Positions 26,899 through 30,488 of a DNA stretch of 64,000 bases are shown piece by piece. A program made the position numbers and the translations under genes. Below the pieces are notes generated by a model. The model searched no databases and was not told where the DNA came from. It saw only the letters and a program-made list of their open reading frames with translations. Positions within the stretch are counted from its first letter, which is position 1. Each line of letters opens with the position of its first letter. The stretch is taken from contig CM106585.1 in NCBI GenBank assembly GCA_048013815.1, positions 11,284,001-11,348,000 of the forward strand, read 5' to 3'. The stretch comes from Setoptus koraiensis (taxonomy: Eukaryota > Animalia > Arthropoda).

Positions 26899-28719
26899 AT
26901 GGAGGAAATCATTAGAACTGTTTTCAACTCTGGAATCATTGATATTAAGGGCTATAAGATTCAAGTAGAGAATGGTATCGCCGAGGGTGGATTCGGTTAT
27001 GTATTCAAGGTTCGAGACGTTACAACAAATACACCCTATGCCCTCAAACGTCTACTGGCAGCAGATAAAGAATCAAAGAAAGATATCCAACGAGAGATTA
27101 AATTGTTGACCGATATACAACCTCATCCTCATATCATGAAATTCATTGGTTGGACGAAAGTAAAGCACAATCTACAGAACGCTTATTTATTGCTGAGTGA
27201 ATTTTGTAGCCAGGGTTGCTTAACTGACCTACAGATGCCAATGGAAAATCACCAACAGATGTATCGCATAATATATCAAATCAGTTTGGCTATTAATCAT
27301 ATGCACAATCTAGGTGTGATACATCGTGATATTAAAGCAGAAAATATATTATTTGATGATGACGGTTTTGTTAAATTATGTGATTTTGGATCGGCAACAA
27401 CAGATTCTTATGAACCTAATTTAGATTGGACACCTCACCAACGGTCCACTGTGGAGGACGACATGCAACGACATACCACACCAATGTATAGGCCTCCAGA
27501 AATATTAGAAACATACCTTCATTATTCCATTAACGGTGCTATTGATATTTGGGCTCTCGGGTGTCTCGCTTACTATATTAGATTTGGCCAGCATGCTTTC
27601 CCAGATTCGGGAAAGTTACGCATAATCAATTGTCACTATAGTATACCGAAGGATGCTAAAGATGGTATCGTCAATGTAATCAAGTAAGTATCATCGGCTT
27701 TCTTTTAAACTTACTCATCTTTTAGATCTATATCCAATGTTTTATCAATACTGATATCCTCTTCTAATTTTTCTTTCAGACAATGTTTGAAGCCGGACCC
27801 CAAGGATCGTATATCAATAAATTCATTGATTCAATCCTTGGAATTGGAGTTCAGTGATACAATTCTAAGAAGTCCAGTTATTCCTTCCAAGTCATCAGCT
27901 TACAAAAGTAGAGAAGACAATAATACCGTTTATCCTGAGTCCAACTGCGTCGATAAGAAAAATAATTTGAAAAATACATTAGATGACTTAAAGTTAATCA
28001 TTCCCGAAGATCCCAAAGAGGACGTACTCATTGAACTAATCGATAGTAACACTCCAACGAAAATCCCACCAGTGGATACCACTAAGATGTTGCATGACTA
28101 CGCTGAGGCGGCTGGTCTGACATCTCAACTTTTATCAGCGACCGAATCCACGAAGAATGTGGATTTCCTCACAGACCTAGAAACAATCTCGTTAAATGAT
28201 GTGATATCTGATCAGAAAGTTCTCAGTCCAGAGAAGGCTATATTGAACGATATTCCAGAAAATAATAGGCTTTTTGGTAAATCAAATGGTAAGAAAGATA
28301 TGTTCGAGGATTTGTTACCAGAATTTAAAAAGAGCACTAATAACAATAATGGACAAAACCATAGGTCAATATTTGCTGAACCAATCACGAGTGGCCACTC
28401 AACTAATGGCTCTCTCTTGGCTGATCTCGATTTTGAATCAAATCATACTTCAAAGATAATGGAATGGAAAGAGAAAAGGCGTGGCAATATAAGAGCTTTA
28501 TTGAGTTCACTACATTTAGTGCTATCTGACGAATTCAACTGGAAACCGATAGAAATGCAGCAACTGATAGCGGATAGCGACGTGAAGAAGGTGTATCGAA
28601 AGGCCTGCTTGGCTGTTCATCCAGATAAAGTCAGAGGCACTGACACCCAGGAAATGGCCAAGCTAATATTTATGGAACTAAATGATGCCTGGAGCAAATT
28701 CGAGAGTAACCAGAGTTAA
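26899..28719 (+). CDS. GAK: Cyclin-G-associated kinase/auxilin lacking the PTEN-like and C2 domains; exons 26899-27683 and 27780-28719, about 574 aa
   Basis: NAK-family kinase (IAEGGFG, ALKRL, HRDIKAEN, KLCDFGSAT, TTPMYRPPE). A 96-nt phase-2 GTAAGT..TTTCAG intron follows. C-terminal auxilin J domain: NIRALLSSL..YRKACLAVHPDK..AKLIFMELNDAW. Confidence 0.93.
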
Positions 28720-28739: not shown

Positions 28740-29039
28740 TTACAAATCTTGCCATCCGTCTTCATTCAGCTTCTTTAGTCTTCTTTTATGTGATTTGCTC
28801 TTCTCATGTTTAATGAGGACATCTTGATCTTGGAAATAACGTGCGCATTCTACACAGTAAAACTGACCATTGCCAACCTGGTCCAAGTCAAATGGGAGAG
28901 ACTTAAGTAATTCGTCTTTGTTCTTTAGATTGGCTATAATTTCATCCAAATCTTTCGTCTTGGTTCTTGTCTTTCCCCCTCGGCGTCCATAACCCTGGCA
29001 TGGTCCCGTTTTTCCTTTCTTACGAGCGAGTCTACCCAT
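28740..29039 (-). CDS. ZNF593: Zinc finger protein 593/Bud20 (pre-60S factor), 99 aa
   Basis: RTKTKDLDEI, DLD..GNGQFYCVECARYF and HEKSKSHKRRLK. Confidence 0.9.
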   Translation of the reverse strand: MGRLARKKGKTGPCQGYGRRGGKTRTKTKDLDEIIANLKNKDELLKSLPFDLDQVGNGQFYCVECARYFQDQDVLIKHEKSKSHKRRLKKLNEDGWQDL

Positions 29040-29056
29040 TGTTTTGAATTAAATTA

Positions 29057-30075
29057 CAGTGAAGTTCAGCCAAATGCGAATGCTGTCCAAATGCGAATGC
29101 TGTCCAAATGCGAAAAATGATCACGTTTTAGCTATATTCACTTCATTTTCGCGAGGTAAATTTGAATTTTGGTAGTGATCGGGGGAGGAAGACCTCCCCC
29201 TCCCACCTCCCCGTTTCATATCGGGGAGGTGGGAGAATTTCCTCCCGCCTCCCCGATATGAAACGGGGACGAAATCCTCCCACCTCCCCCTCCCTAGTTC
29301 GAATCGGGGACGGGGAGGTGGGAGCTCCCCCTCCCCCTCCCCGGGGAATCGTTGGGACCTCCCCAAAAAAATGGGGAGCTCCCGCTTCTCCCCGTCCCCC
29401 TCAGCTGTACTAAAACACAGAATACGAGTGTCAATAAGATGAAAAAATAGCTTAGAATTCATGTCTTGTGTCTTTATATCATGTCTTGCGTCTCTATATC
29501 ATGTTTTGTGTCTCTTATTCATACTTTGCCTCAGTTTTCGGCAATCCGGGAGCTCCCCATTTGTTTTGGGAGGTCCCGATGGTTCCCCGGGGAGGGGGAG
29601 GCGGGAGGACGACCTCCCCGCTATTAGATGGGGAGGGGGAGGCGGGAGCTCCCCGCGGGGAGGACACCTCCCCACCTCCCCCGATCACTAAATTTTGGCT
29701 TGATTTTGAATTTCCCGCGTGGTTTTTCGAAACTTTTCGGATATCCATGAATAATTAATGGTCCTCTTTATCGATTAAATAACCTCCCAAAAGGTTCTAC
29801 TGAGGATTTTTTTTCAATTGATTCTTGAAACTCGATCAAAGAGATCTGCAGAGCATAAAAAAAATCGAAAAAATGATTTACCAGTGGAGGTAAGGCAAGT
29901 AATGGCTGGTCGTCACTAGTTCACAATCTTGAATCTAACTTTAAAACTCGCGCTGATGTTTTGGTCCCAATTTTTCGCATTTGGCTGAACTTTACTGTAG
30001 CTAAAACGTGATCATTTTTCGCATTTGGACAGCATTCGCATTTGGACAGCATTCGCATTTGGCTGAACTTCACTG
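29057..30075. mobile_element. Non-autonomous DNA transposon (MITE/foldback) with perfect 78-bp terminal inverted repeats, Tc1/mariner-like CAGTG...CACTG ends
   Basis: 29057-29134 is the exact reverse complement of 29998-30075, and each TIR has three CCAAATGCGAA motifs. The left flank is TA and the right flank is TT, so the TSD is imperfect. An extra partial end at 29971-29997 is followed by TA. No transposase ORF. Confidence 0.78.
29173..29690. mobile_element. Non-autonomous hAT-type MITE, 518 bp, nested in the outer element
   Basis: Perfect 16-bp TIR TAGTGATCGGGGGAGG (29173-29188 / 29675-29690), flanked by an identical 8-bp direct repeat AATTTTGG (29165-29172 / 29691-29698). An 8-bp TSD and a YARNG-type end are hAT hallmarks. 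Confidence 0.87.
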
Positions 30076-30128
30076 TTGAAGGATCTGTTGAATAGGAGGA
30101 GCAGTGGACGGACGACAATCGCCATACT

Positions 30129-30488
30129 ATGGGTCCTCCAATTAAAAAGAAACCAAAATTGGAAACAAATGCCCCTAAGACAAAGAATCTCTTCAAGTTG
30201 TCGAAGAATTTAATGCAGATGAAATTTATGCAACGGTCCCGTAAGGAATACGAGAAGCAAGTAGAAGAAAAAGAAGGACCTATTGACTTCACGGCAACTG
30301 AGTCCAATGAACGAAATCAAATCACCTATCAGCCAAGTTATGTGTTTTTCGAGAAACTGAGGTTCGGCAGGCTCTCGTTTAAAAGTATGAATGTAGATAT
30401 TGAACAGTTGATGAATTCCAGTAATACAAGCGTTAAAAGGGAGGCACCGTCTGAGTCATCGGATAACGACGACGATTTAATCTATTAA
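30129..30488 (+). CDS. MPHOSPH6: M-phase phosphoprotein 6 (nuclear exosome cofactor MPP6), 119 aa
   Basis: KLSKNLMQMKFMQR and FGRLSFKSMNVDIEQLM match the two conserved MPP6 blocks. Confidence 0.86.
   Translation: MGPPIKKKPKLETNAPKTKNLFKLSKNLMQMKFMQRSRKEYEKQVEEKEGPIDFTATESNERNQITYQPSYVFFEKLRFGRLSFKSMNVDIEQLMNSSNTSVKREAPSESSDNDDDLIY

Follow-up and report, generated by a model that had tools for sequence, protein, structure and literature searches.

How do two divergent genes come to have the same sequence directly upstream of their start codons? The question is raised by a locus in the mite Setoptus koraiensis (contig CM106585.1), where two ribosome-biogenesis genes of this small-genome mite flank a perfect inverted repeat. 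The locus lies in a 64,000-nucleotide stretch of DNA that was analysed at its full length and is termed here the window. Positions without a contig name are those of the window, and positions elsewhere are given as G000:C1 or G000:C2. The whole genome was searched, 48.76 Mb in two contigs. Gene starts throughout are based on open reading frames, not on annotation.

Flanking genes and intergenic spacer

On the minus strand, a single-exon open reading frame of 99 amino acids (28740–29039, ATG at 29039) displays a zf-C2H2_jaz domain (2.4e-10). The label ZNF593/Bud20-like is based on this domain and on the MGR... start. On the plus strand, an MPP6-like open reading frame of 119 amino acids (30129–30488, ATG at 30129) matches PF10175 (2.7e-17). 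Native spacer remains as 17 nt on the ZNF593 side (29040–29056), ending with the TA target dinucleotide at 29055–29056, and as 53 nt on the MPP6 side (30076–30128). The open reading frame coordinates agree with an initial annotation of this DNA, in which the distance from the repeat to the ATG was 17 nt for the ZNF593-like gene and 53 nt for the MPP6-like gene. Without the 1,019-bp inserted block and one TA, the two ATGs would be about 68 bp apart. An original spacer of this length is plausible given the local compaction, as the convergent open reading frames on either side end just 20 nt apart (28719/28740) and 32 nt apart (30488/30521). At such distances, the 3′ ends or terminators of the opposite genes must overlap or be shared.

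A neighbouring gene at 26899–28719 (+) encodes GAK/auxilin, with a kinase and a J domain and without the PTEN/C2 part. A 97-nt GT..AG intron at 27685–27781 interrupts it, and the whole is a single gene. Orthologues of the same short architecture, single open reading frames of 537–549 amino acids with 57% kinase identity, are present in two metagenome contigs, probably from other mites (L078:6013-7662 and L079:5851-7464). In the metagenome scan with the GAK/auxilin kinase, these two orthologues are not beside ZNF593 or MPP6 and are without the pogo module described below.

Structure of the insertion

The arms of the inverted repeat (29056–29134 and 29998–30076) are 79 nt long, 100% complementary and separated by 863 nt; the perfect inverted ends that had been noted earlier are thus real. 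Each arm consists of 76 nt of element, the inner TA and one flank base. As also noted earlier, each has three TTCGCATTTGG boxes, which form a 17-bp unit repeated three times. A 24-nt terminus occurs three times in the window, with 0.00 occurrences expected from shuffles. The two outer copies are perfect (29057–29080, plus strand, and 30052–30075, minus strand). The third copy, absent from the initial annotation, is internal (29974–29997, minus strand); it has one mismatch (CAGTA for CAGTG) and abuts the right arm.

The internal copy is the short-end terminus, of the CAGTAAAG type, of a complete non-autonomous pogo-type element of 941 bp (29057–29997, plus strand), termed here copy Y. Copy Y is flanked by TA at 29055–29056 and again at 29998–29999, directly after its short end. 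Its left end is the long (transposase-5′) one and its right end the short one; the core comprises 423 bp when a nested insert is set aside. The long-end module (29057–29172, plus strand) displays a terminus that begins CAGTGAAG, three 17-bp boxes (29070–29120) and a conserved inner block, and its first 78 nt are the left arm of the perfect inverted repeat. The right arm is an extra solo copy of the long end, consisting of the terminal 76 nt in inverted orientation (30000–30075, minus strand). On its inner side this solo copy begins immediately after the TA found 77–78 nt inside the canonical element, and on its outer side it extends precisely to the terminus. The whole block is preceded by TA and followed by TT, which bears out the earlier remark that the target duplication is broken on one side.

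Four other complete copies have CAGTG at the long end and CAGTA at the short end. Two outward-facing long ends (CAGTG) are found in the window and nowhere else in the genome. The block had been taken for a single element with 78-bp terminal inverted repeats (TIRs). The true TIR of the family is about 26 nt with asymmetric ends, and the window holds a complete copy together with an extra solo long end. The block is read here as a compound pogo-type insertion that carries the long end twice; this anatomy, jointly with the youth of the insertion, is held with high confidence.

The pogo family

Three copies of 2.37 kb carry an open reading frame of 471–487 amino acids with a DDE_1 match at 7.9e-29 (profile positions 2–177 of 177). 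The transposase triad is DD32D, 32 residues being counted between the second and third D of the open reading frame. The CENP-B_N match on the transposase has an E value of 0.0051 and 16.9 bits, which is under the 21.2-bit cut-off, and HTH_Tnp_Tc5 was not reported in the Pfam profile search of the transposase open reading frame. The full-length 2.37-kb copy has TA flanks and a 28-nt TIR at 96%. The 24-nt termini recur across the genome. TA target duplications are found on both sides of copy Y, of a second copy of Y on contig C2 and of the full-length copy; TT lies at the outer right of the compound, and TA follows 9 of the 14 aligned long ends. The long end of the autonomous copies is represented by the 146 nt from the terminus to the first ATG of the transposase open reading frame. 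In the family as a whole the long end has two to three boxes of 17 bp and the short end one; these boxes are probably transposase-binding sites.

Copy Y shares with the autonomous element only about 100 nt at the long end and about 60 nt at the short end. In its interior there is no transposase-related sequence or conserved open reading frame, and the only open reading frames span the G-rich nested insert. Copy Y thus displays the characteristics of a MITE, being short and non-coding, with ends shared with an autonomous partner, a TIR and a target site duplication. The high copy number of MITEs is lacking: in 48.76 Mb two copies are intact, and truncated remnants number about eight. Copy Y is classed here as a low-copy MITE-type derivative of the pogo family.

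The tandem-box pattern is found genome-wide only in the two arms of the window and in five other family copies, with 0 occurrences in the control. The box pair was considered as a general host promoter motif and rejected, the tandem pattern being confined to the pogo family. Single-box 11-mers number 72 in the genome, about half of them inside family copies.

The three intact pogo copies (L048/L056, G000:C2:11901023 onward; L049/L057, C1:11487408 onward; L050/L058, C2:14982622 onward) are not independent insertions. Each stands at the head of one of three versions of the same segment, which extends over at least 12.4 kb and is 99.6–99.8% identical among the three. The left edge of the segment is the exact pogo short end, followed by the element, the CHMP1 gene and a 488-amino-acid open reading frame, and the left flanks differ. 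The triplicated segment may represent an end-bounded macro-transposition or a segmental duplication. A fourth pogo copy (L046, G000:C1:2228300-2231100) displays an insertion of about 900 bp at element position ~407–415, with about 8 nt duplicated. This insertion is unrelated to the nested MITE of the window, and the long end of the fourth copy faces the 3′ end of a 330-amino-acid open reading frame.

Nested element and age of the insertion

The insert in copy Y is a hAT-like MITE of 518 bp (29173–29690) with a perfect 16-nt TIR. The 8-bp target duplication consists of AATTTTGG on both sides (29165–29172 and 29691–29698); an 8-bp duplication and short TIRs are the features of hAT-type MITEs. 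The nested MITE is built of GGGGAGG/CCTCCCC palindromes and has a 74-nt internal inverted repeat at 84%, as well as three 20-bp tandem repeats (29459–29518) within the palindromic surround. Its relatives are found in at least 10 other places in the genome.

One more full copy of Y was detected by the genome search, on the other chromosome (G000:C2:5287361-5288260), where it is TA-flanked. This C2 copy is collinear with 29057–29997 of the window from tip to tip and displays 99.44% identity over 900 aligned positions. The differences are five substitutions, all within 29822–29917, and one 41-bp indel. The C2 copy has the three-box long end on one side only and the short end, with a single box, on the other; beyond its short end no sequence resembling the long end was found. 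It holds the nested MITE at the identical site, and older relatives (L015, L017, L018, L022, L036 and L037) are without it and display an 8-nt overlap at the join. As the nested MITE is common to the window and C2 copies, it predates the last transposition of Y. The initial annotation had assumed a second element that has since inserted inside, which reverses this order. Being older than the last move, the nested MITE is no clock for a long persistence of the perfect arms.

The 79-nt sequence is found at 100% identity in three places, the two arms of the window and the unlinked C2 copy. On the simplest reading, the three identical long ends would be very recent copies. The perfect arms had been taken as a hint of homogenisation or selection. 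With a third copy identical at 79 of 79 positions on the other chromosome, in an element 99.44% identical as a whole, the perfection of the arms reflects youth, and neither homogenisation nor selection is needed. The earlier description of the element as domesticated likewise lacks support: its termini are undamaged, it inserted recently and the genome still has intact genes for the transposase. By its near identity to the second copy and its intact termini, the element is not old enough to have lost the features of mobility.

Long ends and host start codons

The reachable long-end loci in the genome were oriented, the neighbouring open reading frames were checked against Pfam, and 14 long ends were aligned (A2). 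The census comprises 12 independent loci besides the window, duplicated segments being counted once. At 10 of the 12 loci the long end is directed outward to a host ATG at 14–246 bp, and six of these lie at 14–42 bp. The distance from terminus to ATG is 14 nt for a gene encoding an SSB-like OB protein, 24 nt for DUF1674, 28 nt for ARL2, 33 nt for a 485-amino-acid open reading frame, 34 nt for NDUFB8 and 42 nt for FKBP-TPR. The remaining distances are 84 nt (PheRS alpha), about 111 nt (FYVE), 239 nt (a 206-amino-acid open reading frame) and 246 nt (CHMP1). The two exceptions are a long end that faces a 3′ end and one without an open reading frame within 1.5 kb. None of the short ends, neither the two solo short ends nor those of full copies, is within 300 nt of an ATG, and those of the full copies are at least 347 nt from any ATG.

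The null for the distance test is the window's own open reading frames, by which 2.2% is expected within 60 nt and 8.9% within 250 nt. The observed 6 of 12 within 60 nt gives P ~9e-8, and 10 of 12 within 250 nt gives P ~2e-9. Orientation toward the ATG is found in all ten cases (10/10, P ~1e-3). The census statistics leave out the two ends in the window, which would add distances of 17 and 53 nt. The facing of host start codons by the long end across the family is a new pattern.

Most of the tight cases are old remnants, 78–92% identical to the young copies and 75–210 nt in length, with the long end alone kept. Young copies besides that in the window lie 239 and 246 nt from ATGs or face a 3′ end. 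A count of singleton substitutions in the old remnants displays no sparing of the boxes after insertion.

The FYVE-domain gene with its upstream pogo remnant is found on both chromosomes (L053, G000:C1:12037679-12037881, and L054, C2:1693238-1693444; 90.6% identity). The remnant was duplicated along with the gene and is thus older than the duplication; the L054 remnant has lost one box. The copies of ARL2 lie in tandem, and a pogo long end precedes each of them by 28 nt (L072:915-1526, minus strand, and L073). The ARL2 long-end loci are at G000:C2:4405834 and 4410190, and a third terminus is at 4400885. The ARL2 frame continues without a stop into the transposon end; a start at the in-frame ATG found there would lengthen the protein by 19 residues.

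Origin of the compound and promoter donation

The explanation favoured here, taken as a whole and with a little better than even confidence, is that of a recent two-long-ended pogo compound that lies in a divergent promoter and whose long end donates promoter function. A pogo/Tigger-type compound would have entered a TA very recently, when the ZNF593-like and MPP6-like genes stood head to head with a spacer of about 68 bp. Two routes to the compound can be drawn. By route (a), one copy would have nested in another at the donor site, at the TA 77 nt from the long end, and the transposase would then have moved the unit by its pair of outward-facing long ends. By route (b), the nesting would have taken place at the present site, and the left part of the host copy would have been deleted between 26-nt direct repeats formed by the short end of the host copy and the long end of the incoming copy. 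The junctions seen in the window are precisely those that this deletion would produce. In so young an insertion, the TT right flank is accounted for by neither route. As both outer tips are the same long end, the arms form the perfect 79-nt inverted repeat.

Because the long end faces host ATGs at short range nearly everywhere, we infer that it starts or supports transcription outward. Most likely the long end would supply promoter function outward as well as toward the transposase, and it is probably a promoter of a portable kind, not one that was domesticated long ago. Donation of a promoter by the long end, which is argued from position, has about an even chance of being correct. Insertions tens of nucleotides from a start codon would survive only with the long end facing the gene, and a deletion-prone genome would later remove the rest of the element and leave the long end. 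An outward promoter would let the element survive in the 5′ regions of a streamlined genome. It is a more tentative proposal, and one open to real doubt, that a compact portable promoter has been kept repeatedly as a solo long end at about ten unrelated housekeeping genes, with the window representing the start of the process.

In the window, the long ends would act as proximal promoter for both genes. On the ZNF593 side the 17 nt of native spacer are too short to hold the −30 region, which falls in the element wherever the gene's transcription starts. A transcription start site or core promoter within the element had been proposed for both genes by the initial annotation. This part of the proposal is in keeping with the fact that −1 to −100 of both genes is now long end and with the family pattern at 10 of 12 loci; the part that concerns a domesticated MITE is unsupported. 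Had an ordinary copy inserted instead, MPP6 would lie behind the short end, and the single long end would serve one gene only. The compound would thus be the form that survives in this divergent promoter, and we infer that a two-long-ended compound is what a divergent promoter of about 68 bp could tolerate. That the window presents promoter donation by a still mobile-looking element, and not an old domestication, is the reading to which we lean slightly.

Alternative explanations

The same anatomy might be present with no promoter donated. The compound would then be a neutral or mildly harmful recent insertion, possibly polymorphic, and the two genes would start in the flanks or by read-through. 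The family pattern could in that case arise from a preference for TA sites in open 5′ regions, from the elimination of insertions that direct transposase-sense poly(A) or termination signals at the gene, or from better survival of remnants beside essential starts in a deletion-prone genome. Several observations point this way. The distances of the young copies are consistent with it, the tight cases are mostly old remnants that may be shielded from deletion by the neighbouring gene, the singleton count shows no constraint on the boxes after insertion, and the L054 remnant has lost a box. DNA transposons also often favour 5′ regions, which is general knowledge and is stated for Mu (bioRxiv 10.1101/2023.06.05.543741). 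The position of the −30 region of ZNF593 speaks against starts in the flanks, however, and read-through must cross 1,019 bp that include the perfect 79-nt inverted repeat and the G-rich palindromic MITE. In addition, two remnants of subfamily B (at DUF1674 and at the 485-amino-acid open reading frame) have a terminal GGATGA whose ATG, if transcribed, opens an out-of-frame upstream open reading frame over the main ATG. This argues for starts at or after the terminus. Insertion without donation is considered rather unlikely, but it is the alternative with the most weight.

Two further alternatives have little probability. The arrangement proposed at first was a domesticated MITE whose symmetric 78-bp TIRs are kept perfect by selection or gene conversion and act as a co-regulating bidirectional promoter of two 60S-biogenesis genes. 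The position is right for such a role, both genes have the same 76 nt upstream, and no other locus in the genome has two long ends. The role is nevertheless very unlikely in view of the unlinked third copy, identical at 79/79 in an element of 99.44% identity, the asymmetric ends and TIR of about 26 nt that are normal in the family, the intact termini with TA on the left, and the presence of intact transposase genes. The nested element is not a later event, and the other genes with long ends share no function with ribosome biogenesis. Alternatively, the right arm could be an assembly artefact from a chimeric or fold-back read consensus, the real locus having one ordinary copy; perfect inverted repeats are generally known as a failure mode of long-read assembly. 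The extra piece copies the far end of the element, however, and is not a fold-back of the adjoining sequence. It is bounded precisely by the canonical internal TA on the inside and by the terminus of the element on the outside. Transposition chemistry predicts such edges and an artefact does not, and this alternative is deemed extremely unlikely.

Significance

If the long end does drive its neighbours, promoter donation would illustrate a means by which a DNA transposon persists in a genome that is among the most compact of any animal, as the element would bring a replacement promoter to the only places where landing is possible. The presence of a common promoter module at housekeeping genes of unrelated function would likewise be explained. 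As a before-and-after case, the window would present two genes whose shared promoter of about 68 bp was interrupted, with identical transposon ends taking its place, during the last ~0.5% of divergence. Should the insertion be no more than a recent event that the host tolerates, there is nothing unusual about the finding.

Comparison with known systems

The pogo/Tigger superfamily of IS630-Tc1-mariner elements is characterized by DDE_1, DD29-56D, a TA duplication and TIRs mostly of 40 bp or less (Gao et al. 2020, PMC7386202). The mite family, with a DDE_1 transposase of 471–487 amino acids, DD32D, TA, a TIR that starts with CAGT and a length of 2.37 kb, is within these published ranges throughout. 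It differs in that its ends are strongly asymmetric (two to three subterminal 17-bp boxes at one end versus one at the other), in that the match to CENP-B_N, which with HTH_Tnp_Tc5 represents the N-terminal DNA-binding motifs of the superfamily, is below the Pfam cut-off, and in that the family is low-copy, with most copies against host start codons.

Copy Y resembles the MITEs of Tc1/mariner/pogo elements in its 423-bp non-coding core, in sharing only the ends with the autonomous element and in its TA flanks. Unlike these, it is low-copy (two intact copies, about eight truncated remnants) and has another MITE inside. Compound or fractured-element structures are found with Ac/fAc in maize, where they arise from nested insertion and alternative transposition. 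The likeness to the window is structural only, a complete element beside the terminal fragment of a second copy providing a new pair of usable ends, and the superfamily differs from that of the mite pogo.

The closest documented parallel to the mite pogo long end is the outward-reading promoter of maize Mu. Mu inserts in 5′ regions, and its terminal region can start transcripts that read into the gene (Ellison et al., bioRxiv 10.1101/2023.06.05.543741); this outward-reading promoter is described as a form of transposon–host co-existence (bioRxiv 10.1101/2023.06.05.543741). Both are cut-and-paste DNA transposons with 5′ insertions and a terminal region that acts, or in the mite would act, as an outward promoter. 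The activity of Mu has been demonstrated by RNA-seq, whereas that of the mite element is deduced from position. The Mu TIRs are long and symmetric and their activity is independent of orientation, whereas the mite pogo has only one apparently competent end. A single competent end would lead to the orientation bias seen across the family and, in the window, to a compound with that end on both sides.
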